Source: Takakia lepidozioides
Taxonomy: Eukaryota > Plantae > Bryophyta
Length of the DNA: 64,000 nt
Assembly: GCA_030704615.1 (NCBI GenBank)
Contig: CM060734.1
Span: 24,738,001-24,802,000, forward strand
Direction: 5' to 3'
Shown: positions 7,975-62,560 of the stretch, piece by piece
Layout: every line of letters starts with the position of its first letter
Position numbering within the stretch: the stretch's first letter is position 1
Translations under genes and position numbers: made by a program
Notes under the pieces: generated by a model
Seen by the model: the letters and a program-made list of their open reading frames with translations, nothing else
Told to the model about the DNA's origin: nothing
Database searches by the model: none

Positions 7975-9850
7975 GGGTAATCATCCTACTCTTTAAGAAG
8001 GGCGATATCACACGAACATAGCAAACTATAGACCAATCACACTGCTAAATGTGGCATACAAAATCATAGCCAAAGCGCTTGCAAGCCGTCTCCAACCTTT
8101 CCTACCTACCATCATCAGGCCTGGGTTCATAAAGGGGAGGTACATCTTGGATAATTTGCTTTTGGCTTAGGAAATACCTCACTATGCTAGAAGAACCAAT
8201 CAGGCCATCTCCCTCCTGCTATTAGACTTCGAAAAAGCATTCGATAGGGTGGAGTGGTCTTTCCTGTTGGGAGCCCTGCAGAAAATGGGGTTGCCCACAG
8301 GTGTCAATGGGTTAAAATTCTGCTGTTTATTGCTTCAAGCAGGGTGCTCATCAATGGTCATTTATCCAAACCTTTCTCTCTCCTTGGATATGTTCGCCAA
8401 GGATGTCCACTGTCACCCTTTCTGTTCCTTATCGCAGCGGACACTCTAGGTCACATGATGCAAGCAAACCAAGCCATCACATGCCTAAAAACCATTAACC
8501 ACATTACTCGGCAACCTACCCAGATAAGAGAATCCATGTTCGTCGACGACACATTTATGGCGCTCCAATCGAACCCTGCAAACCTTGACAGTGCTGTTCA
8601 CACTCTAGAGACCTTTTGCCAGGCCTCTGGCTTCAAGGTGTACTGGGGTAAGACCTGCGCCTTGCTAGTGGGAGACACTTCAAGATCCCAAATAGGTACC
8701 CAGCCCACATGGGGAGCTGACAAGGGATTAAGATGGCTTCAACCAGGCCAAACAACAACATTGTGGGGATACACGTTTGGCATTGACTTGGCAGACCAGC
8801 AGCGCTTTGGGCCTACGAGGTCAAAACTCAAATCAAAGCTTGCCCATTGGTGCTCCCATCACCTGTCCATCACAGGAAAGGCAATTATCACCAATCAGAT
8901 CTTAGAAGGGGGCCTTTGGTTCTTCTCTGCTTCGTGGAAACCTGCCTCGTCCCATATCAAGGAGGCCAGAAAACTGTTGAGAAACTTCATATGGGGGGCA
9001 AGCAACCACAATGAAAAGAAACGACCGCAAGTTTCATGGAAGCAAATTTGCCTCCCCAAGAAGAAAGGCGGGCTGGGAATCATAGACCATGACAGACAGA
9101 TAACTGCCTTGTTGGCAAAATGGATCCCCAGGTTCCTGGGTCCAGAGGGGGGTTGGTGGAATTTCTTAGTAGCAGACAACATTGCAATGGCTACCCCCCT
9201 TAAATCAGCAATCTGGAAACCTTTATTCCGCTGGATAATGAATGGCTTCAAGCACAAAAACACAGGCTCCACCCTCTGGAATGCCATCTGGCAGGCCTGG
9301 GCTCTCTTGCGCCCGTTCCTCGCCAAATCAGAACCTACATCCTTCTATGAAACTCTCAGACAGTCGCTTTTTCTTAACAATAATGTTGCCTCCCCATCCC
9401 AGAGACAGCAAGCAAAGAAATGGTCGGCCTGGGACGCTAAGGGCATCACAAAAATCGCTGATATTTGGAAACAGGGATGCTTCATATCCAAGCAAACCAT
9501 CTCAGACTTGGTGGGAAATGTTAGAGCCAATCATGGGTATGATGCTTTGATTCAAGCCATCCCTGCCCGATGGGCAGACATCCTCAGAGCTGGTCCCACA
9601 CAGCCGACCTCTAATTACTGGACATTAGTGATATTGTTCAACAAGCTAACCATCCTTCGTAGCTCACTCCACTGGCCAGGTCATGGAAGGGTTCTCCTTT
9701 CACATTGATCCTATCACATTAACCCTATCTATCCAGGACCAGTCCATTCAAACCTATCCCCAGTTCACACACACACCAGTCTCAATATGCTGCTGGTCAT
9801 CTCCTACAAAGGATAGGCCTCGACATAGGATATGCACATGGGAGACGCCA
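7975..9850 (+). mobile_element. L1-like LINE ORF2 (reverse transcriptase) fragment, decayed
   Basis: NYRPITLLNVAYKIIAKALASRL, LLLLDFEKAFDRVEW, VRQGCPLSPFLF, MFVDDT, VSWKQICLPKKKGGLGI; contains frameshifts and stops. Confidence 0.9.
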
Positions 9851-43466: not shown

Positions 43467-43552
43467 AATCTTTACTCCTCCAGCTCCTGCAAATTACACA
43501 CCCAAGCTCTCCATTTCTGCACTTCAGAGTGTTTGTAAGAGACCACCTGACC

Positions 43553-46500
43553 ATGGCTCTAGCCGTGAGCAGCAACAAGTGCTATCATGCAGCTGCCGTT
43601 GTTGTGCCCCCAGCTGCAGTTACAGGTACTGTTCTGTCTTTCAGTTCTCTCCTGCTGGTTTGCTATCCTGCTTTCTGCATTGGAGTCTGTCTGGTGGAAA
43701 AATATGAGAATTGGGAGTGGTGGAATTGGGTTGGTGGCACATCAGGCCGGAGGGAAGGAACAGCTGGTGTGACGCGGAGCTGGTTTCTTGGCCATGGCGC
43801 TTTGGACAGCCGTGTAGCAGCGGGGCAACTGATCAGCCTGACTGGAAAGCGCTGTAAAACACAAATCGTGATGACCTCGGATTTCGAAAAGTGGAATCTT
43901 TACACGGAGGAGCTGAAGCGAACCGCAGCTTTCATTTCTCAGGCTGGGAAGGGAATTCTGGCATCGGATGAAAGCAATGCCACCACGGGAAAGCGGTGCG
44001 CACTCTTCTACCTAAGATTCTGGAACTGGTTTGAATTTTGCTGCTGTGTTGACGAGGAAGTCCAAAATTCTTCTGAATACGGGATTGAGTTTGCATGTCA
44101 ATAAAACAGTGATTTGACAGGGCGGGCCACAATTGGATGTGTGCTAAACTGTGGAGTTGTAGTCACTTGTGTGCTACCGCCCTCAAACATATTTACCGGA
44201 GTTGATATTGGAGATGTACTTTGAATGCGTTAGAACAATTTGGCCTGTTCTCTGTATGGAGAGGGAGAAAGGCAGAAAGGCAGAAAGGCAGAAAGGCATG
44301 ATTTTAAACGATAGTGCAGATTGTTGATTCTGAGGTTGGCATGGTGTTGAAACCCATTACGCAGCAGGCAAACCTTTCAGAGGAGAGCTTTTGTGAGAAT
44401 GGACTCTTTTGTTTTATCGGAAATTGGGTGGGCAGGCTGGCGACAGTAGGCCTGGAAAACATGGTGGATAACAGGCAAGCCTGGCGTGAGCTGCTCTACT
44501 CTGCTCCAGGGCAATGTATTGTACTCTTTTACGCTAACTTGCACGAAGTCGATCTCGCAGCTCTTTCGGGGATTTTGGTAGATATTTGGTGTCTTGAAAC
44601 TCTGAGCGACTCTAGTAGTTGCAGCATGAATGTGAACTCTGTGCAATAGCTTTATATCGACCATGGCTCACAGGGAAGAGGAGCTAGCATCCATGGTTAT
44701 ATCATTGAATAAGATGTGTGGGTTATAGCAGTATATAAGTGGCACCATCATGTTCGAGGAGACACTGTTCCAGTCATCACGGGCAGGGGTTCCATTTGTG
44801 GAGGTGTTGAAGCAGCAAGGCATTCTGCCAGGTATAAAGGTGGACACAGGCCTGCAGACCATTGATGGCACTGATGGGGAAACTGCAACACAGGGCCTGG
44901 ATGGTCTTGCTGATCGCTGCAAAAGGTACATTTCTTGTGCTGCCACCCCTGCCTAAAAATTGTTATGGGCAGATGGATTTCTAACTGTTGAACATATTTG
45001 CGGCTTTGACTTCAATAGGTGCTATCAACAGGGTGCCTGACTTGCGAAGTGGCGCGCAGTGATAAAGGTGGACTCAGACAAATTCCCTTCATCTACGGCC
45101 ATACTTGAAAATGCACACGGTCTAGCCCGGTATGCTCAAATCTGCCAGGTACGTCTGTTGCTCCTACAATGTTACTGGACCTCAGTATCTAATGGCCAAA
45201 TTTCAGCTAATTGTAGTCATTTTGTACTCTTGTGGGAGGACAACTGTTGTGTCTTAGCAGATTGATACAGGAAGAGAGAAAGGGAGTAGGAGCCGTGGCC
45301 AGGACAGCCTAGAAGAGCAGCGTCAATGCTTGATGCAAAGTCACAGATTCGAAGGTTTGAGTGTAAACAGCGGGTTTATGGAATACAGTTGACCTGCAGG
45401 CAAATGGTCTTGTCCCAATTGTTGAGCCAGAGGTGACACTTGGTCCTGGTGACTACAGGTACAATGTAGTGCTAATACCCCCAACATTCCTCCCAGTTCA
45501 TTTCACAGTGCTTTTCCAGCTTCTCATTCTGAACCTGGCCATTTCATCTTCAATCGCATGGACATTTGCCCTTTCATATGTTAGTCCTATTGTGGCAGCA
45601 TTGAACGAACTGCATACATTTCGGAGGAGGTCAATTCGCACTTCTTCCGATTTTTAAATGAGTACAAGTAAGCAGCAACTCACTGACTTCAATTACCACC
45701 TTCAGAATGTTGTTAGTTGCAACTATTTTCACAAGTTTGCAGTTGTTAAAATTCTGAACAGGCTATGTATGTTGCATTCCAAGAATGCATTGCTTACCAG
45801 CTACCCAACGAAACGAATCTCACTCTGATTGTCATGATTCTCTGTGAAATTTTTGTCCAATGCACCAGTGTTATTTTGGAGGGCATCCTGCTAAAGCCCA
45901 ACATGATACTCCCAGGTATGGCAATTGCCCTGCAATTGGTGATTATACCTGTAACAGTAAGGAAGTGCAGGGAAAGAGAGGGTCCAAATGCAGACTCTAT
46001 TCATCAAATAGCAAGGTCACACAGCTGTTCAATCTTTTCCTTGGTCTAATACAATGAGGATCCACCATGACAAGGCCATAACCATATCAAGGGGCTCTTG
46101 CACTACAAAAGTATGGTAGCAACATAATGCAAATGTCAAGAACAGCAAAGGGCATTGTCGCAAGATTACTCTGGTCATGTGTGAGGTGGAACTATCCAGC
46201 TGGGCAAGTATGGAGTGCTGACTGTGGGAGACGTGGGATGGAACAGGTTTGGATGTGCCCACACTACCACCTGAAGAGGTGGCGCGCTACACCGTGCGCA
46301 CCATGTTGCGCTCCATCCCGGCTGCTGTTCCTGGTATACACTGCAAAACAGCACTTAGGGTTGCCATGTGGGTTTGTAGTTGCCTGCAGAGGGAGCCAAG
46401 AATCTCTGATTGATAGGCCTCGCAAGAGTGTGTCTTCCCAGTATGGCTGTTATCACAAACTGAAGGACGGTTAACCGGAGTTATATGAACTCAGGACAAA

Positions 46501-47317
46501 TGACTATTTCAGTACCTTGAGAATTAATTGCTTCCATCAGACTATATATGTGGATATGGTGTTTTGCAGGTATTCACTTTCTTTCGGGAGGAATGAGCAA
46601 GGAGGAAGCAACCTTAAACTTCCAGGCTCTTCAGGTGGACCTTTCTACCAAAATCTGTTCTAAGGTGGTTGGATGCCAGATGATGCTGGTGATAGCTGCA
46701 TTGCTGCATCATGTAGAGGGTCAAGTTATCGATTGTGTCAGGCATAACGGGATCTACGCAATTTCCACCTGACAAAAGCCTCCCTAACACCTCAGTGGCG
46801 GCATGATGTGTATAAACAGGCGTTTGGACCCACTCCCTGGTCTTTGACTTCCTCTTATGGTCGTGCTCTGCAATCCAGCACTCTCAAGATGTGGTCGGGG
46901 AAGGTAAGTGCCGTTGATTCATCCTGTAGTTGAAGATGAGGCTCCAGTCGAAAAATATCATTTGAAGAGGAGCTGTTTGCCAGCTTGTGTTTCTCAAATG
47001 TAAATGCCTGCTACGCCTATGCTGAATCTCCTGTAGTGCTTGTTCAGGAGGAGGATTGGAAAGCAGCACAGGAGAGGTTTGTGGCACTTGCCAAAGCTAT
47101 AACTCAGAAGCCCAGGCAAGTGCTGATTCTTCTCTTCTTTTTATCATAGAGGTACAAAGTTTTGAGGCATCATTAGCCTGTAAGCTGATATTATCACTCT
47201 CTAAATTTCTGCATGGCTTTGACAATTTTGCAGCTGGGGAGGTACACAGGATCTCATCCTTCACCTGGTGGGACAGGGATCCTTCAAGCTCTAAGACTTG
47301 GAGGAATTGGGAAATAA
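43553..47317 (+). pseudogene. FBA: Class I fructose-bisphosphate aldolase, plastid-type, disrupted
   Basis: Spliced motifs [73 protein letters not shown]. In-frame TGA at 45038-45040 (GA*LAKWR versus GARFAKWR) and a 2-nt insertion near 47098. Confidence 0.88.
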
Positions 47318-47808
47318 TATCTCTCATCATCTCCATGCAGTTTTAACTAGCTTCAGCTACATCTTCAACATACAGCAGGTTACACAATGGTAAATTTTGA
47401 TCAGTTTAAAGTTATGCTATCAATTTGGAAAAGCTCTCAACTACTTTCTTTAATGGTTGGGGGTTTCTTGCAACTGGATGATTGAGATTGGTGTGTTTAG
47501 GCAATGAAGAAAATCACATGTCATGATTAACATTTTGCATTGACCTACATAACTTCAACATAGTAATTGCCTTGATGTTGTTGTATTGTCTGTATTTATC
47601 ATGCCACTTGAATAATTATTTTCAGAGTTCAACTGAAAAGTATGAGTTTTTCTACCAGTTAGTCAGTTGAGCACATGACACAAAATGCACAAATGCTCGT
47701 ACATCCCAATTTTAAGCACCATTTACTCAAATCTCGCAATGTACACTTTCCAGGGAGTTTATGAGGTAAATATCTGCAAACCTGCCAATCCTAGCTTAAT
47801 CCATTGCA

Positions 47809-49441
47809 CTAACATCTACTCTCCCACTTCATCATTCTCCCTTTTCCTTGCTGCAAAAACTCTGCACTTTTTTCAAAAATGTCAGGTTTATGACTGTAGT
47901 CTGCAGCAGATTTTCCACCATCTTCCTGTAACATTCTGTCCAAGTCCAGCTGCTCTGGATTGATGCAAATTCCTGTGGAAGTGGGTGAATTACCGGCCAC
48001 TGCTTCCTGCAGCTTCAGATTGAGGCCTATACCTTCTCCCTGCTCTCCCACCTCACCACCGGCATATACTCTCCAATCCCTCCCGCTCTTTGTAAAGAAA
48101 CTCCTCCCCACACTTTCACTTGTAGCACTTGTCATTGATGCTGCAGTTTGTTGTCCATCAGCATCAACTAAATTATTAGATGTTTCCAAGTATTGTTCTT
48201 CAATGGCCTCTATTTCTCCCACAATATCACCTGCCACAGCATCAGGCCCTTGCTCATTTCTGTCATGCGGCCTTCTTTGACTTGGAAGAGGAGTCTCTGA
48301 AGTGCAATCTGCAACGGTACTCCCTGAGACCTCCTTCACTGAATTATCCCCTGCATGTCTAACCCCTGACCTGAGCATCTCCTGTCTGTCGTTGAGAACA
48401 TTATTTTCTGGAGTAACTTGCTCATGATCAACCATGTACTCAAAACCTTCATTGAGACTAGACTTATTCGACACTGAACCTACGAAACTGGATGCAGGAA
48501 ATGGGCTTGTTGCATCACCTCTCATACTGTTCCCGTGGCCCTGAGCTTCTGAATGCAGAACGTCTTCAAAGAAATCATTGACATCAATAGTCTGACAACA
48601 AAAAGAAAAAGAGAAGGACAGGAAAAATGTCAGATGATCACCCAGCAGCAGTACAAGCTTCTCATCGATTAGAGCATAGTATTTCTACTCACAAAAGATT
48701 AGACGAGCTGAGAGATTAAACTGAGAAGACAAGTATTCAATATTGACGAGCGCTCCTCCAGCAGTCACCCTTATGTACTCGATACTCACGGACACCCTTC
48801 TCTCCGGCGAACCGGTCTAACCCTGTGCAACTACGCCCCCGCTACTTAAAGCTGCAAGCGCCATTCCAGCTGAAATACTCGCACAGTTCTTCCAAGTATT
48901 TCCCGCTTAAGCATATCAAATGTCTGTTCTCGTGATCGAATATAACTCCGGTCGAGCGTGGAAATGCTTGTTGCCAGCACGAAAGCAGGCAATGGAGAAT
49001 CACCAGCTGAAGCACATAACGGACACAATATATAAACTCATTACATCTACTTGATAGAACGAGAGACACAACAACGATATCCCTGCTTTTCATTCCGAAG
49101 TATTTCACCTTTGAGTTGTTGTCGTTGGAACCAGAGGCAGTACCCACAACTTTCAGGCAATGAGACGAACGTGCGCGGAGGGGAGAACCCGACACTGGTG
49201 AGGATTTGGAATTTTTCCTGCACATTCTTTGTGCCGGTAATGCAGCTGGACTCCTCTTCTCAGTTTGAAACTTGAGCAGGTGTTGTGGTGCCAAACGAGA
49301 GCTTATTGCTCCTATACTGCTTCTACTAGGGCGGTGGAGCTTCAAACAGGAAGAGGTATGAAATGAAGCAGTCTCCGTGAGACGAACTTCCTTTGCCGGA
49401 ATGCCAACCTTCACTACTCCTTCCAGTCTGCAAGTTGCCAT
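47809..49441 (-). CDS. Unknown protein with putative plastid transit peptide, 3 exons
   Basis: Exons 49109-49441 (Ser/Arg-rich N-terminus), 48790-48816 (TGSPERRVS) and 47809-48591 (TIDVNDFFEDVL...); all phase-0 GT-AG joins stay open. Confidence 0.6.
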
Positions 49442-49781
49442 TGCGCCACGACAGAACCTTCTGCCTACACTACTCTCTTATTTGTTTCCAAAGCTTACAA
49501 ACCAAAGCCTTTCAGACAGCTTGTCGGCCTGCCACCTCTCTGTCTGTGCGAGGATGGCGAAGCTGGTGAGGAAGGCACGCGGCCACGCCGCCCCAAGTGC
49601 ATGGGAAGATCGCAGATAGGCGCCACGAGGCGCAAAATCTGCTCGTGCAGCTGGCTGCCCCTGCACAAGTGCCACCTCCCTACAAAATCATCGTCCTTCT
49701 CCCGCCCAGAAAACTTCGAAGAAACAGACTTTTGGGTTGACCTCTGTGACTCAGAGATCTGTGCGACCTAATTAAGTATTA

Positions 49782-49903
49782 GGTAACGTCCATTGGGAGC
49801 CACGTTACCTGGGATAATCTGCCGAAGAGCCAGCGAGCGGCGGGAGCCGCGAGTGCTCTACGGCAGATTATCCCAGGTGACGTGGCGACCAATGGACGTT
49901 GCC
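49782..49903. repeat. Long cruciform/hairpin upstream of the recombinase gene
   Basis: Arms 49782-49830 and 49855-49903 (44/49 complementary), with inner GCGGC-GGGA-GCCGC hairpin. Confidence 0.9.
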
Positions 49904-51344
49904 GTACGTAATTTGTGTTGGCCAGGAATTCTCACCCTACGAAAAATGCTTCAGGGTTTGAGGTCAGGGCCAAATCGTTGTAGTTTAGCTTTCACACAGA
50001 AGGGTGTCCCATGCAACAAGAAGGCTTTGGCTATGGTGAAAACAAAATCAGGTGCCTCTCGTTCTCGTTCTCGACCTCCAGATGCAATTGACAGAGCGCC
50101 GTTGGTCGAGCATTCCAATCAGATTAATGCATATTACAACGTCGTCAAAGGGCTTCATCGTTCCGATCAACCTGTCTGTATTGGTGCATTACCAGCTCCA
50201 GGGTCCGTTGTAGCATTTCAAGAATGCTGTTCACCTGCAACTATCGACGATATGCAAATCGATGATACTTGCTCTCAGGAATTGCAATCTTTTAAGGGAA
50301 TTGATTATACTAGTTGTTAAACATTCATTTCCTGTAATTTTGCATGGAGTTGCATGCATTTAACATGTTAGAGTTGCTCTTACTTGCAGTATCCAAATTT
50401 CCACATTGGTTTCGAGGATTTGGTTGAACCCGACAAGGATTCTGAAGCTTTTGTGGAGGCGAATAAGGTCTTCAGTGACACTGTGCTAATTCCAGATGAG
50501 GATTCGATGCATCTTGATGGTCTCAAGAGCGATGAGGGCAATGCTAACGACATATTTCTTCCGTTGACGAGGAAGAACTTAATGAAATGAATGCAGGTGG
50601 TCGCAATCGAAGCGCAGCTGCCGACAGATGGTTCAAGTTACGGTTTAAGAAGTGGCAAAAATTGCACAAATACCATGAGGACAGTGAACCAGAATATATG
50701 GCGCTCAATATTCTTGCCGATGCCATGGTGTCGTTCATACTTTCAGTTCGAAAACTGAATGGGGAGTTCTATCCTAGTGCCAGGTAATTGTAACATGTTG
50801 TGCTTATGGCTGACACTGAAATCCTCAAGAATCTGTAGTAGGTTTTTGGCCAAGTTTTTTAATTATCTTTTGTTCTTATTCAATTGTTTTTGGCTTGCAG
50901 CCTTGCTCAGATATTTCGAGCGTGTGGGAGGCTTATTCGCAAAAAACAGATACGGATGATCTGCGCAACGTGTGTTGATGAAGTACCAATTCTTATCCAG
51001 ACCCATGGATTTTTTGAGCGAGCTCGGGTAGTGCTTGTCAAATCGATGGATCGCTCAATACAAGCTAGAGCAAACAAGAAGCGTGTTAAGTCTAACCCTG
51101 TTTTATGGAAATATGAGGCTGATTGTCTCAGGGATGAAGGTCACTCTATCAATCACCCTAGCGGTGTCCAGAAGCGATTTTGCTACTACTTTCTTTCTCG
51201 ATTCATGGTTCGCGGATACACAGAACTGTACAAACTCCTTGACAGTGATTTCTCATCTAGAGATGATGAGTTATCTATGTTTGGTGAGTTTTTAATGCAC
51301 TTTCGTAGAATTTCAGAAAATTTACGTTATGTTTGTACCAAGTA

Positions 51345-52985
51345 TTATTTTTGTCTTGGTGCAATATCAAGCAGTGATTTCTGGCAAGCTGGAGACCATC
51401 GATATTCGGCATCTTGCTTCAGCAGTCTATAGACTGGTGCCGCTCTGTGAGCATATTTGTCCATGTACCTTCTGTAATAGCTCGTCTGTCCCAGAAATCT
51501 CTTGAGTTTCTTGGGATTTTCTGGTGGTGGTATTTTCTGGATAACCTCCACTTTCTTTGGATCTACCAGAATTCCTTGTCGGCACACAATGTGTCCCAAT
51601 AATAATCCTGAATTCACACAGAATGTACATTTTTCCGGGTTGAGACTTATTCCATTGTTTCTGCAGGCTTGTAGGCAAAGTTTTAACTGTGCCAAATGTT
51701 TGGATTTCTGTCCAAAGACACTGAAATCATCCAAAAATACCTGCATAAAATCATTGAGATAGTTCTTGAATATCTCAGATACTGCTCGTTGAAATGTGGT
51801 TGGTGCATTGCAAAGTCCAAATGGCATGACTTTGTAAGCATATGCTCCCCATTCAGTGATGAATACGGTCTTTTCTTGGTCTTCTTATGCCATCTGTACC
51901 TGGTTGTACCCACTAAACCCATCCATGAATGAGTACATTTCATGTCCAGCCACTGTGTCCAACACTATTTCAGTGAAAGGTAGTGGAAAAGGGTCTTTCT
52001 TGGTTCCTGCGTTTAACTTGCGGTAGTCCACACACACTCGTAGTTTTCCATTTTTCTTGGGTACTATCACAATGGGCGATAACCATTTTGGTGTCTCTAC
52101 TGGGTATATGAATCCTGCATCCAGTAACTTCTTGATTTCTTCCCAAACTTTAGCTGCATAGTTGGGGTTCATTCTGTAACGGTTCTGACGAATTGGTTTT
52201 ATGTCAACTTCCAATTCAATTCGGTGCTGACAGATGTTAGAAGGTATACCCTTCAAATCCTTGTAGTTCCAGGCAAATACATCCTTGTATTCAGTGAATA
52301 ATGCGGTGGCTTCTTGTAGAAATGATTCTTCAAGACCTGCACTTACTCGTATTATCTCTGGTTCTTCCACTGTTCCCAGATTCACTTGAATCAATTGAGT
52401 TTCTTCCGTTACTGTCCATCCTGCAATCTCTTGTCCGATGGTTGCAATTGTGGCAGGTACTTCACTGATTTGAATGTCTTCTTCCCTTTCTTGATAGAAC
52501 CGGGCCGGGTGTTGAGGTGTGTCCATCGCTTCTTCCTCTGGATCTTCAATTCTCGAAGTATTTGGTTCTCCTTGGGTGTTCACCATGTGACATCCTACTG
52601 TTGTAGTATGCTTAATCACCAGTTGTCCAATAGGTTCCAACTGTGGATGTGCTGTGTATACTGTGGCTTTTTCTTCATCCGACAGTCCACTGGACCAATC
52701 ATATTCTTCCACTATGCAAGGTCGTTTCTCTCGTGGAATGGTACCTCGTTGGTTCGTCGTAATGGTGACTTGTTCTGCTCCCTTTTTTATTGTGAGAGTC
52801 TGACTTCCCCAATCGTGGTGTGATTGGGCTTGTGTTAACCATGGTCGGCCAAATAGTAGTGAATATCCCTCTGCCACATCCTCCATTCTGAGAATGGTTA
52901 CTGATATTTCGTATACCAGTCCTGCTACTTCCATTGCAAGTCGTATGATGATCCCTAATGGCTGCACTTTTCGTTGATCAGCCAT
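51345..52985 (-). pseudogene. Gypsy pol (protease end and RT), truncated before RNase H/integrase
   Basis: LLFGRPWL, WLSPIVIVPKKNGKLRVCVDYRKLN, FMDGFSGYNQ, MPFGLCNAPTTFQR, VFLDDF; in-frame stop at 51885. Confidence 0.9.
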
Positions 52986-55250
52986 TCATACCGTGAATGG
53001 AGCAGGTTCCATGTGCCCCAATCCTAATGACTTCTTCATCTTTTCTGTCATGATATTCACTCCTGATCCTCCATCGATGAGTACATTTGTTACCATCTTC
53101 CGTCTAATACGTACTTGTATTACGGGTACTGCTTCGTCGTAATCTGGAGTTTGTCGTATAGTTGTGGGTTTAATCGTGTAAACCTCTGGTGTTGGTTTTT
53201 GTTTTGGTGTGGGGGTCAATGCCTCGATCGCCTGAAATAAAGTTTTCTTGCACTGTGGAGCAATTTTTAATAATTGTCCAATGGTAATTTGGGTGTTGGT
53301 TTGGCAGATTACTTCGGCCAATTCTATTTTCGTGGTTGTATTCATGGTCTTCACCGTTGGTCTGATTTGCTTATCTGGAGTTGGCTCTCCAGAAGGTATA
53401 TGGGTTCCCTCTTGCATTTGAGCTATGGTTTTACTTACTTCCTGGTGTAAGCTTTTTTCCTCCTGCCATGCTGCACTTTCTGGATATTGTTTCCGTTCTT
53501 CTTCAATCTCCTTATCTGGAGGTTTCTGATTCTTGGCCTGAGTTCGGATTACTATAAGAGTATCCACTACAGGGGTTACCACACTTACAACTACACTTGG
53601 TCCGACTTCCATATTTCCCACTTTTGCCTCATGCTTGATTCGCAACTGGCATTCATGTTTCCAGTGTCCCTCTTTCTTGCAATAGTGGCATCTCGTGCTT
53701 TCTTTGTTTCTGGGTTGATGTTCCCTATCCCTTGGTGGATATTCATTTCGTGGCCTCTGATAACGATTACCCATGTTGTATCGTCTTGGTTCGTCCGATC
53801 CTCCCCGTCGGATTTGGACTTGGTGTACTCCCACCTCTCGTGTGTACCCAATCTTCTTGGCCCGTTGGTTATAAATGCAATGGCTGGTATTATGATTGTT
53901 CATATGACAAATATCACAGTATTTGTCCTTCACATGGCATTCCGTTGCCAGGTGTCCTGCAGTCCCGCATTTGTGACACCATGTTGCCTTTCGTGGCCCT
54001 TCATCTTTAGAATTCTTGATAGCCTCTGCTATCTTCTGATCCAAGGTGGTTTTGTCAATCACTTCTTTCTTCTTTTGCTTGGGCTTTTCTTCATCATCAG
54101 AGTCTTCTTCTTCCAAGAGATCCTTGGAATCTTTGCTTCTACTCTGATGGAATCCCAATTCCAACTTCTTTGCAGTCCCTACTGCTTCAGCCAAAGTGTT
54201 GTTAGGCATGACTGTAACCATGGTTACGTATTCAGGACGAAGTCCATTGGTGAACCATGATTTTTGCAAATCATCCCCTGGTGCTTGAGGTAGTTTCCTG
54301 ATCAGAGTCTTCATTCTCTCCAGATAGTCGACTACCAATTCTTTCTTTTTCTGTCTTAGGTTCTGTAATCTTGTGAAGATTGCAGACGTGGATTTGTTGG
54401 ATCTATATCTTTCTTGAAACACGGCTCTCATATCCGCCCAATTCGCAAAGTGATTGGCTGGGAAAGTTGCCAACCATTCAATGTCTTTTCGGGCCATTGA
54501 ACAAGGAAATAGTCGGATCTTCTCTTGGTCTGTTGCTTCATTGTAAATGGTGCACATGTTTTCAAATTGATTAAGATGGATATCTGGATCAGATTTCCCA
54601 TCATATAAAGGAAATGGTGGTCTGGTTTTGCTTGCTGCTAAAGCCATCGGTGCAGCTGGTGCTGCTGGTGCAACTGGTTGTCCAAACTGGGATGGTCCCG
54701 CTGCTGCTGGCTGTGGTGGTGTTGGTGTTTGTCTTCCAAACAGTGATTCAAAGCTAGGAGGTCTTTGTCCCAATGATAGTCGTCTCCCAGCTGTTGTCCC
54801 TATTAAGCTTAATGAATCTTTAAAAGCTTTGAGTGCAGTTCTAGTTATCATTTCTGGAGAAATGCTTTCACTTCTTTCACCTTCTTCACTCAAAATGTTC
54901 TCAAATCTTTCTTCTAATATTTCAGCAAAACCTCTATTTGGGCTTGTTACTGTAGAAGGTCCTTCAGATCTTTCTTGTGGTAACCATTCACCAAGTACAT
55001 TACTGGCAACTTCTTCTGGTGTAGTGTTCCCACTTCCCACCAATCCGATTTCCTGATCTTCTGGTTTATCACTGTTTGATGTCTCACCTTGAATAATTTT
55101 CAAGTTCTGTAATTCTGGGAACTCTTCTCTTAACCGAGCCTCCCTTTCTGCAGCATATTTCTCTATTCGTTCAACTCTGTCTTGTTTAGTTTTTTCTTTA
55201 ATTTCCTCATTCATTCCCACATCATATGTAGAATTCCTTTTCAGTACCAT
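52986..55250 (-). CDS. Gypsy Gag-protease ORF (754 aa)
   Basis: YDGKSDPDIHL capsid-like region, knuckles CHKCGTAGHLATEC, CDICHMNNHNTSHC, CHYCKKEGHWKHEC, and protease VLIDGGSGVNI; TGA is in frame with pol. Confidence 0.9.
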   Translation of the reverse strand: MVLKRNSTYDVGMNEEIKEKTKQDRVERIEKYAAEREARLREEFPELQNLKIIQGETSNSDKPEDQEIGLVGSGNTTPEEVASNVLGEWLPQERSEGPSTVTSPNRGFAEILEERFENILSEEGERSESISPEMITRTALKAFKDSLSLIGTTAGRRLSLGQRPPSFESLFGRQTPTPPQPAAAGPSQFGQPVAPAAPAAPMALAASKTRPPFPLYDGKSDPDIHLNQFENMCTIYNEATDQEKIRLFPCSMARKDIEWLATFPANHFANWADMRAVFQERYRSNKSTSAIFTRLQNLRQKKKELVVDYLERMKTLIRKLPQAPGDDLQKSWFTNGLRPEYVTMVTVMPNNTLAEAVGTAKKLELGFHQSRSKDSKDLLEEEDSDDEEKPKQKKKEVIDKTTLDQKIAEAIKNSKDEGPRKATWCHKCGTAGHLATECHVKDKYCDICHMNNHNTSHCIYNQRAKKIGYTREVGVHQVQIRRGGSDEPRRYNMGNRYQRPRNEYPPRDREHQPRNKESTRCHYCKKEGHWKHECQLRIKHEAKVGNMEVGPSVVVSVVTPVVDTLIVIRTQAKNQKPPDKEIEEERKQYPESAAWQEEKSLHQEVSKTIAQMQEGTHIPSGEPTPDKQIRPTVKTMNTTTKIELAEVICQTNTQITIGQLLKIAPQCKKTLFQAIEALTPTPKQKPTPEVYTIKPTTIRQTPDYDEAVPVIQVRIRRKMVTNVLIDGGSGVNIMTEKMKKSLGLGHMEPAPFTV

Positions 55251-55830
55251 TTAAAACAGTCTTGGTATGTCTGTAAAGAAAATTTATAGTGTCTCTACCC
55301 TTTCTTCAAGACTCATCCTATCTTGCAAGAATCTGTATTACAACTTAATTTTCCTTTTTATTGATTGATCATCAAACTTTTTAATGGGCACAATAATACC
55401 ATCTGTCTTTTTCAGTGTATTTGACTTGCAATAAGTCTTTGGGTATCCAGTACTCCACTGCTTCTATGATCGTGTGACAATATTCATAATTTGAACATCA
55501 TTCTCTGAAAATATAACTAGTGTAACAAACTTTTCTGATTGGGATTAGAGTAATCAATAGAGCTAGACGAGACAACCACTCTTCACTTCTAATCCTACAT
55601 TCACAAGGTGCTCGTGTAATACTGATCACTCATCCCTTCAATCCCCATTTGTCATCTTGTTTCACGACTGATAGAAAGATTTTTTGCTGTATTGCTCTTG
55701 GTAAACCATGAAAATTTTCCAGGAATGTTTTCCATTCCTTTGCTTCTGTTGACTCGTTCTGTCGTGATTTCAAGAAATCACTGAGTAACCATCCTTCTTT
55801 GAGTACTTTTGAACTCAACATACCGTTAGT

Positions 55831-55847
55831 CCCCAGTATGGTCGCCA
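55831..55847 (-). promoter_or_regulatory. Primer-binding site
   Basis: TGGCGACCATACTGGGG begins 2 nt after the LTR end (...TTAACA). Confidence 0.75.
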
Positions 55848-55849
55848 AA

Positions 55850-56699
55850 TGTTAACCACTGGTTTATGACTTAGACAAAACAGGCTATTAACACTATTGC
55901 CCATTTCCTAAGACATGCAACAGAGGTTGTCCGACGGTATGCTTTCAGAAACGATTACGAAGTAATCATTTTAAGGATAGCTAAACCATGAACGTCGGAT
56001 GAAGCCATATCCTTGCAGACTACTTAATCCTATTGATTAAGACCAATCTACAGTCTCTTAAGCATAAAAGATCTTAGTTGAAAGGACTGAAACCTCTTGG
56101 TTCATACAAGCAGATGGTAGTCAAGAGAAAACAAAAACTATTCTGAGATGATACACATTCTCACCATCTCACGTTCACTCTACACAGAGATACTTCGAAT
56201 AGCATGGCTTTACTTCATAGCTCGTCACATCATCACAGAAGTACACAGAATCACTCTGAGTCCCTCTAAATACACATTGATCACTGATACTCATACTGCA
56301 CACCCTCTAAGTTGCGTGCAGTTTTTTTATACTATGCTCGAAAGAGTCGTTACAGCCTGCGGTCGTTAATGACCGTTTGCCTAACTACCTACGCAACCTA
56401 AAAGGTTTGCTAAAAAGTGGCTCGTTGTAGTGGTCGTGAGCCATAGTGGTAAACGGTCCACTACTTCCTCTATTGGTTAAAGCCGATGCTATCGTGACCG
56501 TGTGATATCGTGGTTCACGGCTCACGGTTACTACACTACCCCTTACTGCTCTCGTGGTAATGTACCCTTATCCCGCCATTGGCTAAGTACCGCGTACTTA
56601 GCCGTCTCTGCCTGTGGCTCAGGTAGTGTACGTCCATCACTACCCAGTATGTCCCGTTGCGACCCTCGTTGTCTGTCCCTCGTAGCATAGCCGTTATCA
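55850..56699 (-). repeat. Single LTR (~850 bp)
   Basis: TGATAAC...GTTAACA termini (TG...CA with short inverted ends), with a PPT on one side and a PBS on the other. Confidence 0.8.
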
Positions 56700-56702
56700 T
56701 TT

Positions 56703-56719
56703 ACTCTCCCCCCTCTTTT
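56703..56719 (-). promoter_or_regulatory. Polypurine tract
   Basis: AAAAGAGGGGGGAGAGT immediately precedes the LTR 5' TG. Confidence 0.8.
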
Positions 56720-56889
56720 GAAATTGTGTCCGCACAATTTCGACAGTTCCTGTACTTGCTATATCTCTTGGGGATGTAAGGTGGTGGCATGCCTGTCTGC
56801 GAGGTAGGAAGTGCGTCCCAGGATTGTTGTGGTGGCAGCTTCTTGTTCCTGTTATCGTCACTGTCTGGTTGTTCCTGTGGTTCGTGAGC

Positions 56890-58782
56890 CTAGCTTTCTT
56901 CATCAGGGTGTTCTGCTATCCCGTCCCCACGTACCATATCGACTTTGTTGGTCAAGTTTTCGCGGTAGGTTTGCAGCTCCTCCTTGGTCCAGGGTATAAT
57001 GTGTTTTGTTGCCCTGCTGCCCATTAACCAGTTAATAGCTTGGACCCCTGTTTCTTTGAAAGGGTGGTCTCTGTCCAATACCAATGGTGAAAAGTGGTCC
57101 TTTGCCTGGCGCCATGCTTCAGCATAAAGTGACCTTTTCATATATGCTGAAGTGCCTGTGACTCTCTCTGGTGGCTGGAATTTGGGTAATTCCCAGTGAG
57201 TATCTTTTTCAATGCTCTCATAGCGCTGCCAGTTTCCCCTCATTGTCACGAACATGCGGTACACGTAACAACCAATATAAAAACTTGGGCATCCCATCAC
57301 AATGGTTACTGCCGAGGTAGGATTAATCTTCAATTGCCCCACTGCCCACATGTCAGCTACCAGCTCCTTGTATTCCAGAGGAGCTTGGCGCCAGAATTCA
57401 ACCAATTATGCCCCTGACCATGTCTTATCCTTAGCCAGTGGTCTCATCCTATATCTCAGAGGAATAAGAGTTTGATTGAGAAGATGCAATTGACCCAATG
57501 ATTTGCAGGGAGTTAAGGTTTTGAAAACCTTCTCCAGTATTTCTGGGATTTGGTGGGCTGGTACTACCATCATTTTAAAGTATTCCTCTGAACACTTTAA
57601 CCACTCCTCATCCTGCTTGCATGGCATGATTTGGAAATCATCCACTGCTACTGAAGTTGATGCTACCAGGACACTTGGTAGTGTTACAGGGTTTACCTCT
57701 TGAGTAGATGGCCCTGCTGTGGCCTGTACCAGTGTCTGTTGGTTTGGTGGTGGTTGTGTTGCTGGTGGTGTTTGTGTTGGTGTTGTTGTCTCTCGTTCGT
57801 GATCTTGCTCCTCTTGATCCTCTTCATCCATGAGTTCCTCTTGTTCTGGAATTGATGGCAAGAACTCCTTATGAATGTCTGTCACCAATTTCGCCAACTG
57901 GCACTTCATTTGCCTCACCATTGCCCTGTTGAGTTTCTTCATCTCCAATTCACTCCCTTCATTCAACCAGGCTCTGGCTAAGGCTACGTCTGCTACATCC
58001 AACCCTGCTTGCAATGTCAGCTTCTCCAGCTGCTGCTTCAATTCTTGTTCATTGCCCATGGCAATGTCTCTTTCTGTGGTGGCGGTAAACAGCTTGCTCT
58101 CAGCATTCTCCCTTTGCTTCAGCAGTGCAGTGTTGCTGTTGAGCCACTTGGTTCCCTGATCTCTGGCAGTCCTCAGCTGCCCCTTGAGTGTCTCCACCTG
58201 CTGCTTTAATGTTTGCACCTACCCTGTGAGTGTTTCCACCCCTGTCTCTGTTTTCCGAGATCTCTCTCGCTCTGCATCGAGGTCGGCTTGGACATGGCGT
58301 GTTTCGTCTCTCTGTCTTTCCCACTTTTGCTCCCACTCATCTCTACGTTGTGCCAATGTGTTGTATTGGCGGAGTAAGGTTGACTTTTGATCTTCTAATG
58401 CTGCAATTGTAACCTCATGGTTACATACTGTTCTTGCAGTGGCCAATTCCCTCTGGTGCTTCTCTTTGATGTGGTCTAAGATCATGTTCAGGTTTTCCGG
58501 GCTGATGTAATCATTGGCCATGTCCATACGTTTCAGTTGCCCCAATGCTTGTATTGCTTGCAGAATGACATTTTGTGGTGCTTCCTCCAACCCTGTGTCC
58601 CATGCTGTTGTATCTAAAATTTGTTGTGCTAGTAGTAATTCCAAATTGGAATTTTTGTCTTGCTGCTGCTGACTCGGTGCCTCTTGCACCATCTGCTGTT
58701 GCTGCTGCTCGGGTGTCTGTTGTACTATCTGCTGTTGCTGCTGGTCGGGTGCTTGTTGCACCATCTGCTGTTGCTGCGCCAC
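56890..58782 (-). pseudogene. Additional retrotransposon 3' ORF (Gln-rich repeats plus coiled coil), broken by two in-frame stops
   Basis: ORFs 58219-58782, 57406-58218 and 56890-57405 abut in one frame (~630 codons); 36-bp repeats encode QQQQQMVQQAP. Confidence 0.7.
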
Positions 58783-60797
58783 TATGTCTCCTTCATGGTT
58801 TCTGATTCTTGATTAATATGTCATCTTCATTGATCATGCAGATACTCAGAGCGTGATTCAAAAAGATATAAAGCATCCATGTCAAAGTATCAGGAAGAAC
58901 ACTTCCGAGCTCCTGTTACTTGTTATGAGGCTGATGTGGTGGCCACTTACAAACAATTAATACGACATATGCCCCCGAAAGAAGATCCTACAATCGGATG
59001 ACACCTATTCTTGCAGCCGATTCGAGGCAATCCCCAAACCAATGTAAGTATTATAGAGCTTCCCATCATAGTTAAAATTAAGGTATGATAAACATTGCAT
59101 TAACGTAGCGTGTTGCCCTCACCCTCATAGTGGAGTTAGTTAATATCCGATCGTTGTGTTTTGGATTTGCAGGCCTGGTTCAACAGAAATAACATTGGAG
59201 TGAAGGTTCTTACGGCTTGGACCAAGAATATGTTGGCTCTTGTTGGATCGAACGGTGTCTACACTAATAAAAGTCCAAGGTATGCAACAATTCAACGAAT
59301 GATTCAAGCGGGAGTGCCAACTCAGGTGGGCATGTCTATCTCTGGACACAAGAATGAAAATTCTTATCGATGGTACGACCAGTCTTTGGAGGTACAGAAA
59401 ATGGCAGCAATGCAAATCATTGCGGAACCCTTCAAGGATGACAAACGCCGTAAGTTCGAAGAAGTGTTTCAGGAACTAGATGCTAGGGGTATCCATAATG
59501 AGCTAAGAGATCATGATAAGCTTCCTATCAGCTTACAGAAGTCTGAAGATCAGCCAAGTGGATCGGCCAATGTTAGCCACACAGAAGTAAATCAGGCGGT
59601 CACCAACGAAGTCAATCAGACTGAAGGTAGTCAAACCATTGCCACCATGAACGACGATCTTGCTGATATTGTGGATTTTGACTGTATGATGATGAAAAAA
59701 TGGCCAGAAGGTGGGGCACATCTTGGTTGTCGGATTGAGAACTCCAGATTTGAAAGTACCAAAATCGGTACATCATTCAATAATTGTCATAATTGCACCT
59801 TCAATATCTCGTTGGATGTGAACAGTCTGCAGGAATTTTATCCAAGCAGAAGTGATTCAGATTTTACACGGGCCAAGAGCTATGTAGATATGGCAAATAG
59901 ACTTGCTGATAGAAGACAAGTTGTGCTGATAGAAGTACTTGCAACAGATCACAAATGTGAGGACTACTTGTAATGATCGAAGGTTGCTCTAAACATTATA
60001 TTGTGCTAACTTTCTCTAAGAGCAGTGAACTGGAGTGCACATGTGCTATTTTGAGCATTCAATGAAGTATCATTTCCATGCTATAAGATGTGTACAACCA
60101 TAATCACATTAGTTAGAGGTGTCGAAATCAGTCCTAGTAAGTGGTGGCATGACATAAACTACCAGAACTGAAAAAGTCGTCAAAAGGTGGCCACCAGATT
60201 ATGACGGTAGATTATGGCATATAATCTGACGCCGAAAAGGCCAGAATTTCGAGCCAAAGCAAATCACGTGATGGGTGATATATCAAGAATCTCAGCCATT
60301 GCACTTGCAAGTGTCTGTATCGGTTTACACTAGACATAGGATAGGAGTTTAATGCGCGCGTCTGAGGCTTGCCGTTACGATCCCCGGAGCTAACCGGAGG
60401 ACCCCGTGGGCCGGCGGTCAAATCCCCACCCCTGCTTCCCTCGTGTATGCTTCACGCCCATTTGGGGTCCCACGCTCCATGTTCCCGCCCCGCCGCTCCC
60501 CTGTTCCCGCTCCTCCGCTCCTTTGTTATTGGAGCGGCGAAGCTGTAAAACAGGGGAGCAATATCACAAGGGAGCCGAGAGTAGTAATAGGGGAGCGGTA
60601 ACAGGGGAGCGGCGGAGCAATAACACAGGGGAGCAAGGAGAACAGGGAAAGTAGACCAGTCATGGTTAACTGAAAGAATCAGCTGCTGATTACAGACCAA
60701 AAACAATCCGCTAAGGCATAAACCTAAGAACCAAGTTCTACCATCTATGCCAACAACCCGAAGAGCTGTTTGGAATGCGCCAGCGCACACTTCCACT

Positions 60798-62560
60798 GGG
60801 ATCCTGGAGCTCTTCTTTGCAAGCAAGTAAGACAGCTTATTAGGAACTTCATATGGGGAGCCCCCTCGGTGGGTCATAATCGTAGGGCCCTTATCTCCTG
60901 GGAGAAGATCTGTATGAGTAAGAAGCATGGTGGTTTGGGCATTCTCGACTTTGAATCTCATCCTTGCCAAATGGATTCCTCGTTCTCTGATGAACCCGAA
61001 GACTCCCTGGTCATGGCTCCTCCGAGACTACATGTCTTCTGCCATTCCTTCCACCTCCCCCCTTTGGCTCCCCTTCTTCGTTGGGTGATGCAAGGTGGAA
61101 AATCTAATTCCAAACTACTGTGTGGCTCGGCAGCGTGGGCTGCAATCTGGAAAGCCTGGCATGATATGAGACAGTTCCTCACACAGATCTCTCATTCAAA
61201 ATAAAGATGAAGATCTGAGACAACCTCTCTTTGGAAATTTTAATGACGACAGCGAGTCCTTGGTTATCTACTTTGCCCGTTGGGCACACTGGGAAAGCGC
61301 TGGGATTTCCACATACGCTAATATCTAGTCTCATAGTGCACAGGATCTCCTTCCCTTCAGCAATTCACCACAATGGTGGGAAGCAGGAGAGCTCGACTAT
61401 TTGGCCCAACTATCCTGGCTGACATGTCTCCCAACTGGTTTGCCCTGATGAGAGAGCAGGTTGTCACCACAGCCTCCTGGCATAGATGTCTACCTCCCAC
61501 AATATGTCATGCCATGTTTGTTTTCTCGGAATCACAGATCTCTTGCAAAGGTATTGGTTTTGTCAGCATTTAGGATAGGCTTAGCCCCCTGTCATCCTGT
61601 GTTGAAATTCCTGCAAGAAACAGTTTGGTTCAAATCAGAGTGGCGGACTCTATCTCGGGCAAGGTAGATCCAATCCCCCCTCTGGCTGGTTGGTGGGATT
61701 GGCTCTCTAAGGTAGACCTTTTCTGGTTCGGTGGCAAACCGTTGGTAGACCCACCTTTTGACCCCGGGGAATGGAGATGGATCAAAGAAGAAAGATCCAT
61801 TTTTTGATTACTTGGCCAAGCTGGGATACTCCATGCTACATCTTTCTTTGATCAATAAACGGAAAAAGAAGTGGAGGGGTATCTTAGATCCTGGCACGGA
61901 CTGGGCAGCAGTCTGGAAGGATATATGGCTGAAACACCTCTTTGCAAAAGCTTCGAGCTTTCTTTGGAGACTGGCCCACAGAATCCTCCCTTTTGGAGCT
62001 TACATGTCAGATGACCCTCCTCTTCTCTGCAAAATGTGTTATGTTTCACCCTGGAGCACGGCCTCTTTCATTGTTGTTTTGCTACGACTGTTTGGTCTAG
62101 AATTCGTGCTTTCTACGCTCCTTGGAAAATTGTACATTCCAATTTGGTCTCTATTCACTTGCTGAATTTGCAAGGAAGGAACATCTGGCACAGGTGCCAT
62201 GTCTGGTCTTCCATTCGCTCTCTCACTCTCTAGCATATTTGGAAATCCAGGTGTGCTAAGTGGTATGAGGGAGATTACCCTTGTCTGAGAGCGGTTCTTA
62301 AGATGATCTTTTTTTATTCATGGGTTGAGGGGAAAAAGGCTTGTGGGGGGGGGGGGTGCGGTGAGGTTGCAGCTCATTGCAGATGTTCTAAAGAGAAACG
62401 GGCCACGTTACTTCAAGAACTCGATTCTTCGTGGGGTTGGCGAGACATCATCTGTACCAGAAGTGGGGACAAATGCTCTTTCCACCCTGCGGTCCCCGAC
62501 CAATGGTGGCCCCTCTAATCCCTGGCTCTTGACTTCGAAAAAGACATTAACTGGAAACAT
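60798..62560 (+). mobile_element. L1-like LINE 3' fragment (post-RT and zinc-binding region)
   Basis: LIRNFIWG...ISWEKICMSKKHGGLGILD, WKDIWLK..KASSFLWRLAHRILP, CKMC...HGLFHC. Confidence 0.85.

Follow-up and report, generated by a model that had tools for sequence, protein, structure and literature searches.

A probable broken Crypton/DUF3504-type tyrosine recombinase gene with ancestral introns in the bryophyte Takakia lepidozioides

A stretch of 64,000 nucleotides (nt) from Takakia lepidozioides (GenBank assembly GCA_030704615.1, contig CM060734.1, forward-strand positions 24,738,001 to 24,802,000), hereafter called the window and numbered from its first letter, contains on its plus strand, at 50390-59973, what is very probably a broken gene for a Crypton/DUF3504-type tyrosine recombinase that retains ancestral introns. 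As to its origin, we lean towards a relic that is old and immobile, left by a lineage of Crypton-like elements that has persisted in land plants and was domesticated several times. The locus itself is an ordinary pseudogene, and its value lies in the family: it opens a view of a plant-wide recombinase lineage in liverworts, mosses, lycophytes and ferns, of which no description was found in the papers searched. The hallmarks of this lineage are intron positions as old as the land plants, a conserved Lys at the position termed His II (the first His of the catalytic H-x-x-R), and a C-terminal motif of its own. Since it holds competent-looking as well as domesticated-looking members, the lineage would offer a plant case for the persistence and co-option of recombinase transposons, and its Lys-for-His replacement a natural variant for recombinase chemistry.

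Gene structure

Judged from its sequence, the locus is a genuine split gene. Four plus-strand coding segments (50390-50783, 50901-51287, 58842-59043 and 59173-59973) connect in frame through canonical GT..AG introns, the DNA being read at each junction. The two halves, which lie on either side of a long gap, belong to one gene because the full-length relatives P0001/P0050 align colinearly to both of them in tblastn (E 4e-72 and 3e-64 over the two halves); the C-terminus of P0001 also matches the tail of the gene (E 1e-10), and the identity of P0001 to the window exons ranges from 52 to 77%. The exons were searched one by one rather than as a joined protein, and P0001, the closest full-length relative, was used as the proxy for folding. 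An initial annotation of this DNA had assembled five exons, up to 8 kb apart, into one protein. Its quoted motifs were indeed recovered on the plus strand from the open reading frame (ORF) list and a motif scan, namely VRKLNG at 50746, the Arg of VRG at 51211, ERDSK at 58849, K-x-x-R at 59269-59280, His at 59347 and Tyr at 59374. The assembly stood for four exons; the proposed first exon found no support, and the pieces are not intact. The large gap also stood, as one ancestral intron that holds a Ty3/gypsy fragment, and the two halves did not turn out to come from different genes.

The gene as we read it starts with an acidic N-terminal region (50390-50562), which lies one frame off the conserved core and has colinear tblastn matches to P0050. 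It is followed by the conserved exon 2 (50563-50783; 53% identity to P0050), which is covered by an RNA contig over 50601-50780 and ends in a donor AG|GT at 50783/50784. Intron 2 (50784-50900) is 117 nt long and interrupts a Ser codon in phase 2 (AG|GT...AG|C); the junction reads ...YPSA|SL..., and the intron is spliced in RNA. Exon 3 (50901-51287; 58% identity to P0001) comprises the end of the N-terminal domain and the start of the catalytic domain, with the first catalytic Arg (Arg I) at 51211-51213, and an RNA contig covers 50898-51294. Intron 3 (51288-58841) is again in phase 2 (GA|GT...AG|A) and measures 7,554 nt, being a short ancestral intron that retroelement DNA has lengthened. A second choice of splice sites (51283|51284 with 58849|58850) would also keep the frame, at a cost of four residues; the sites given here were chosen because the intron of the relatives sits at that position. 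Exon 4 (58842-59043) is the segment with 77% identity to P0001 and carries the beta-hairpin Lys at 58861-58863 as well as an in-frame TGA at 58999-59001. After intron 4 (59044-59172; 129 nt, phase 0, GT..AG), exon 5 begins at 59173, has its stop at 59973 and contains K-x-x-R (59269-59280), His (59347-59349), Tyr (59374-59376) and the conserved C-terminal motif (59656-59847).

The unconfirmed N-terminal segment at 50033-50320 (plus strand), which was exon 1 in the initial annotation, is closed by a TAA at 50318-50320, has no in-frame GT donor, and has no similarity to the N-terminus of P0050 or to any relative. Because it shares the frame of 50390-50562, with two stops in between, the two stretches may once have formed a single long first exon, of which this would be the decayed front part. 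No second copy of the recombinase gene was found within the window.

The 7.55-kb gap is an ancestral short intron enlarged by a minus-strand Ty3/gypsy fragment. This fragment (51345-55250) has the order gag, zinc knuckle, protease/reverse transcriptase (RT) and was recognized by the Pfam families Retrotrans_gag (E 1.5e-11), zf-CCHC (E 1e-4) and RVT_1 (E 1.5e-14). Upstream of its gag, on the same strand, the ORF list gives three consecutive coiled-coil, Gln-rich ORFs of 171, 270 and 187 amino acids (56890-58782), for which no Pfam family was found and an atlas search gave weak leads only; possibly they represent an additional 5' ORF belonging to the retroelement. Only ~57 nt and 59 nt of intron 3 lie outside the minus-strand ORFs. 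No pair of long terminal repeats was found within 48-62 kb, and no other copy of the Ty3/gypsy fragment in the window.

Relatives and family membership

A comparison of exon 3 alone (128 amino acids) with 1.84 billion representative proteins yielded 49 hits, headed by P0001 (E 1.5e-38), a match well outside what chance would give. Four of the 49 (P0002, P0004, P0027 and P0048) were rejected as relatives, being tandem-repeat proteins in which many weak matches had been summed. All named relatives are from non-seed land plants, namely Marchantia polymorpha, M. paleacea, Calypogeia fissa, Ceratodon purpureus, Selaginella moellendorffii, Diphasiastrum complanatum, Adiantum capillus-veneris and A. 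nelumboides. In a tree built on the exon 3 columns, the window copy was paired with P0001 (support 99) among at least six deep plant lineages, the order of which is unsettled. The word-indexed protein searches returned six close bryophyte-type proteins among the matches listed for the family profile, only itself for P0050, and no match in the 148-472 amino acid length range for exon 5; two completed metagenome locus scans found nothing.

The profile evidence for the DUF3504 and phage integrase families was weak and recurrent. Exon 5 matched Pfam Phage_integrase weakly, at the C-terminal end of that model (E 0.088), and none of the window exons hit Pfam DUF3504 (PF12012; gathering threshold 29.7 bits). 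Among 16 relatives, sub-threshold matches (E<=1) to DUF3504 were found in seven (best E 2e-5) and to Phage_integrase in five; the Marchantia protein is named 'DUF3504 domain-containing' in UniRef. The profile check gave recurrent sub-threshold support, but nothing at the Pfam threshold. A language-model search placed P0018 nearest to DUF3504/Phage_integrase/QRICH1 clusters of molluscs and cnidarians, with a score of 0.98 (PF12012, PF00589, PF25561). Overall, the assignment to the Crypton/DUF3504-type tyrosine recombinases is supported by the fold, these feature neighbours and the catalytic residues.

Predicted fold and active site

Residues 215-600 of P0001 were modelled by AlphaFold2 from a 16-row alignment, with a mean predicted local distance difference test score of 71; residues 20-300 of the model were well predicted. 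The tyrosine-recombinase fold that had been proposed for this locus was recovered in the model, which matches QRICH1 and, over both domains, Cre. QRICH1 is a domesticated Crypton protein, and its chain 9hjt_H was the top Foldseek match (E 1.2e-5), followed by about 30 Cre chains (E 1e-4 to Cre); the top 50 structural matches were all recombinases, topoisomerase IB or Ndc10. In VIA-align, the scores were Z 13.6 for QRICH1, Z 12.7 for Cre over 274-280 residues covering both domains, Z 10.6 for XerH and about Z 8.4 for topoisomerase IB. By this model, P0001 is predicted to have the two-domain fold of a tyrosine recombinase, consisting of a core-binding and a catalytic domain.

In the family alignment, the window copy retains Arg I, the hairpin Lys, Lys-x-x-Arg, His and Tyr, and its reading frame is interrupted by the TGA between the beta-hairpin Lys and K-x-x-R. 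The last four catalytic residues of Cre are H289, R292, W315 and Y324, and the spacing in the window copy (K+3 to R, R+23 to H, H+9 to Y) equals theirs; because of this match in spacing, the Lys is taken to occupy the His II position. The replacement of the His of H-x-x-R by Lys, which had been suggested from this copy, was found to be true of nearly all plant relatives that have the catalytic set, a few having Arg. Arg occupies His II in Marchantia, in which the active-site His is also lost, and in P0036. Arg I is lost in the Selaginella proteins, in Ceratodon and in Calypogeia P0012, and the Selaginella proteins are without the entire C-terminal catalytic segment. The C-terminal motif at 59656-59847 of the window is common to P0001, P0018, P0019 and P0036.

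Intron history

Introns were mapped by exact spliced matches between annotated proteins and the loci that encode them. Each of introns 2-4 of the window copy has a counterpart, matching in codon and phase, in Marchantia Mp5g04240 and in Selaginella LOC9657615, and Ceratodon has the middle one only (the intron 3 position), at the same position and phase. In these relatives, the counterpart of intron 3 is 286 nt (Marchantia), 67 nt (Selaginella) and ~140 nt (Ceratodon), with no RT inside. By these shared introns, three with Marchantia and Selaginella and one with Ceratodon, the gene structure goes back to early land plants, and the lineage is an ancient one among them.

Two members are differently built. 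Calypogeia P0068 has none of the three introns and one of its own. P0050, which has all the catalytic residues, is encoded in its genomic context by a single uninterrupted ORF of 843 codons (843 amino acids); with regard to a retrocopy origin of this intronless gene, no poly-A follows the stop codon. The P0050 locus adjoins a plant lipid-transfer-protein gene and retroelement ORFs.

Decay and transcription

The copy had been described as decayed, and this was confirmed by a frameshift near 50562 and a nonsense codon at 58999. In tblastn, P0050 aligns over 50393-50581 in one frame and from 50563 onwards in the next, which fits the loss of 1 nt at ~50561-50563. When 901 nt were searched, P0050 residues 192-245 matched the frame of 50390-50562 (E 5e-4), and residues 243-314 the next frame. 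In the alignment, P0001, Marchantia and Selaginella all have Arg where the window copy has the TGA at 58999-59001, which fits a change of CGA to TGA. DNA contigs agreed with the assembly over 49852-50461 and 50474-51399, the frameshift site included. One extra DNA contig was ~88% identical to 50200-50461, with indels summing to -21 nt, a multiple of three; it hints at a paralogue in which this stretch is still coding.

RNA contigs were taken from two runs of the same species, in which two spliced neighbour genes served as positive controls. One contig of 577 nt (contig 24, run X7), with a single mismatch, joined 50601-50780 to 50898-51294. Intron 2 had been removed exactly in this RNA, and the same contig continued 7 nt beyond the intron 3 donor; no RNA run held words of exons 4-5. 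The copy is transcribed at a low level, and a full recombinase is not obtainable from it.

An intact member of the family would comprise a core-binding domain at its N-terminus, followed by a catalytic domain with Arg, the hairpin Lys, Lys-x-x-Arg, His and, as the nucleophile, Tyr. To judge from its family, it would be expected to cleave and religate DNA by way of a 3'-phosphotyrosine linkage. The ancestor of the window copy was catalytically complete. Since then, one ancestral intron has gained ~7.4 kb of Ty3/gypsy DNA, the N-terminal region has been disrupted by the 1-nt frameshift, and a conserved Arg codon has changed to TGA upstream of K-x-x-R, His and Tyr.

Origin of the locus

Whether the lineage is mobile was judged from its copies. 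In Adiantum capillus-veneris, three gene models (P0019, P0054 and P0055; accessions KAI5075093, KAI5080618 and KAI5071405) are 98.6% identical, each on a chromosome of its own, and where the span of a full-length model is recorded, as it is for two of them, the introns add up to ~335 nt per gene. A second pair (P0007 and P0016) is 97% identical, on different chromosomes. These near-identical, dispersed fern copies suggest mobility for the plant lineage, not for the Takakia copy. It should be noted that all three of the 98.6% identical copies are without a 29-residue His/Tyr segment in their annotated proteins, and that the P0007 gene model has pentatricopeptide repeats fused to the recombinase. 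The Marchantia gene is single-copy and more than 90% conserved in M. paleacea. In favour of a mobile origin, the full catalytic set is kept in the window copy, and some of its residues are lost in the conserved single-copy or fused genes; accordingly, Marchantia (His lost) and Selaginella, Ceratodon and Calypogeia P0012 (Arg I lost) fit the description of domesticated genes better than the window copy does. It is possible, and we offer it only tentatively, that an ancient, intron-bearing Crypton-type transposon lineage whose recombinase has a Lys-x-x-Arg active site resembling that of topoisomerase IB exists in land plants, still mobile in ferns and perhaps in this genome, and repeatedly domesticated, as in the Mp5g04240-type gene and the fused lycophyte genes.

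For the Takakia copy itself, the status of a DNA transposon proposed in the initial annotation was not borne out, with no terminal repeats found, no second copy of exons 2-3 at >=80% identity, host genes as neighbours, and introns shared with the single-copy, catalytically degenerate Marchantia and Selaginella genes. The copy-number check suggested there gave one copy of 50474-51399 at >=80% DNA identity, together with the paralogous ~88% piece at 50200-50461 only.

Several observations weigh against the locus being a relic of a Crypton-type element. In the structural model, the segment with K-x-x-R, His and Tyr, i.e., the catalytic C-terminus, is of low confidence. DUF3504 scored below the Pfam gathering threshold in every plant member tested (best 24 bits, E 4.4e-5), and two profile searches of the sequences in the PDB gave no recombinase. 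P0050, the closest relative, which has all catalytic residues and no introns, is one locus seen in 12 metagenome samples (JGI contigs L001-L009). Terminal inverted or direct repeats flanking the gene were not found beyond chance, the candidates being rejected as matches of 10-12 nt only; exons 2-3 (50474-51399) were single-copy at >=80% DNA identity in the DNA run, a result that applies to the 5' half only; expressed host genes lie directly upstream; and the introns are common to apparently domesticated genes. The TGA and the frameshift, furthermore, depend on an assembly that may have no complete DNA support other than the reads from which it was built.

Some of these same points would be expected of the chief alternative, which takes the locus for a duplicated and since decayed copy of a domesticated host gene. 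In that case the plant lineage would have turned into a family of cellular genes early in the history of land plants, and the copy would have arisen by ordinary duplication and never have transposed in this genome. The three intron positions common to the single-copy Marchantia gene and the Selaginella genes speak for it, as do the single copy at >=80%, the lack of termini and the flanking host genes. However, the window copy and its nearest relatives keep the catalytic set that the clearly domesticated members have lost, near-identical copies are dispersed in a fern, and introns travel with DNA transposons when these move, so that shared introns are compatible with mobility; we consider this alternative rather unlikely. 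Still less probable, indeed very improbable, is a working gene with a giant intron, in which the stop and the frameshift would be assembly errors or would be bypassed, e.g., by a start at the ATG at 50587. Such a gene would account for the transcription, the correct splicing of intron 2 and the retention of all catalytic residues, and the ATG at 50587 does lie downstream of the frameshift. It is opposed by TGA 58999, which interrupts the catalytic domain at a conserved Arg, by the RNA contig that runs 7 nt into intron 3, by the absence of words of exons 4-5 from all RNA runs, and by the DNA contigs that match the assembly over the two stretches named above, including the frameshift site.

The presence of an RT domain between the two recombinase halves might also recall the DIRS/Ngaro/PAT-type retrotransposons, in which RT and tyrosine recombinase are encoded in one element. 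Here, however, the recombinase unit is without an RT or RNase H of its own; the only RT nearby is that of the Ty3/gypsy fragment, which is on the opposite strand, accompanied by Retrotrans_gag and a CCHC knuckle in the Ty3/gypsy layout, and it lies within an ancestral intron that is 67-286 nt long and RT-free in relatives. The best fold and feature matches, moreover, are to DUF3504 and QRICH1. As a same-strand unit of RT/RNase H and recombinase was not found, this reading was rejected and is given hardly any weight. The broken Crypton/DUF3504-type gene, most plausibly an immobile relic, remains our preferred account of the locus.

Comparison with known recombinases

Fungi, animals and stramenopiles are the known hosts of Cryptons. 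No land plant is listed in the survey by which the Crypton groups were defined (PMC3212892), and full-text literature searches found no paper describing a land-plant Crypton. The plant proteins resemble CryptonA and the DUF3504 derivatives (QRICH1, ZMYM2-4, KCTD1 and the Glomhoppers of Glomeromycota) in their two-domain fold, their DUF3504 neighbours and the absence of RT from the unit. A 2026 paper on Glomhoppers describes intron-bearing DUF3504 Cryptons in fungi, among which active-looking and domesticated members coexist (PMC13465315); the plant lineage is likewise a mixture of active-looking and domesticated members, with introns in many copies. In the plant gene, as in the animal Cryptons, which are without terminal repeats (PMC3212892), no such repeats were found. 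Unlike this set, the plant members score below the Pfam gathering threshold, have Lys (sometimes Arg) for the first His of H-x-x-R, possess a plant-specific C-terminal motif, and share three intron positions that are conserved from liverwort to vascular plants.

With Cre, XerH/XerD and lambda Int, the plant protein shares the alignment of its model to Cre over both domains and the identical spacing of the last four catalytic residues. It differs from them in its sequence (~8-12% identity), in being encoded by a eukaryotic nuclear gene with spliceosomal introns, in the Lys for His II, and in having a C-terminal tail and, at the N-terminus, a long acidic region. The type IB topoisomerases have a related catalytic fold (Z ~8.4); their match is much weaker than those of Cre or QRICH1 and is confined to 123-133 aligned residues within 137-344 of the model. 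Topoisomerase IB also has a Lys three residues before the second Arg.

Neighbouring features

The recombinase gene lies among other features of the window. A further retroelement piece, an RT ORF, was found at 8254-9708 (RVT_1, E 1.5e-9), and on the other side of the gene a plus-strand ORF at 60770-61204, for which Pfam gave no hit, presumably resembles the C-terminal region of a plant LINE (long interspersed nuclear element) reverse transcriptase. A class-I fructose-bisphosphate aldolase gene (43529-47112, plus strand), identified by Pfam, precedes the recombinase gene by about 3 kb; it is well expressed and spliced in RNA through six GT..AG introns. Between the two, a strongly expressed minus-strand gene (47231-49380), with CT..AC joints at 48225/48514 and 48591/49109 and no Pfam family in its ORFs, diverges from the recombinase gene across ~650 nt. 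A palindromic repeat of ~160 nt (49772-49933), MITE-like (miniature inverted-repeat transposable element) with 49-nt arms that are 90% complementary, is located 100 nt upstream of the start codon of the initial annotation, and it recurs across many of the genome's DNA contigs as well as inside other transcripts.

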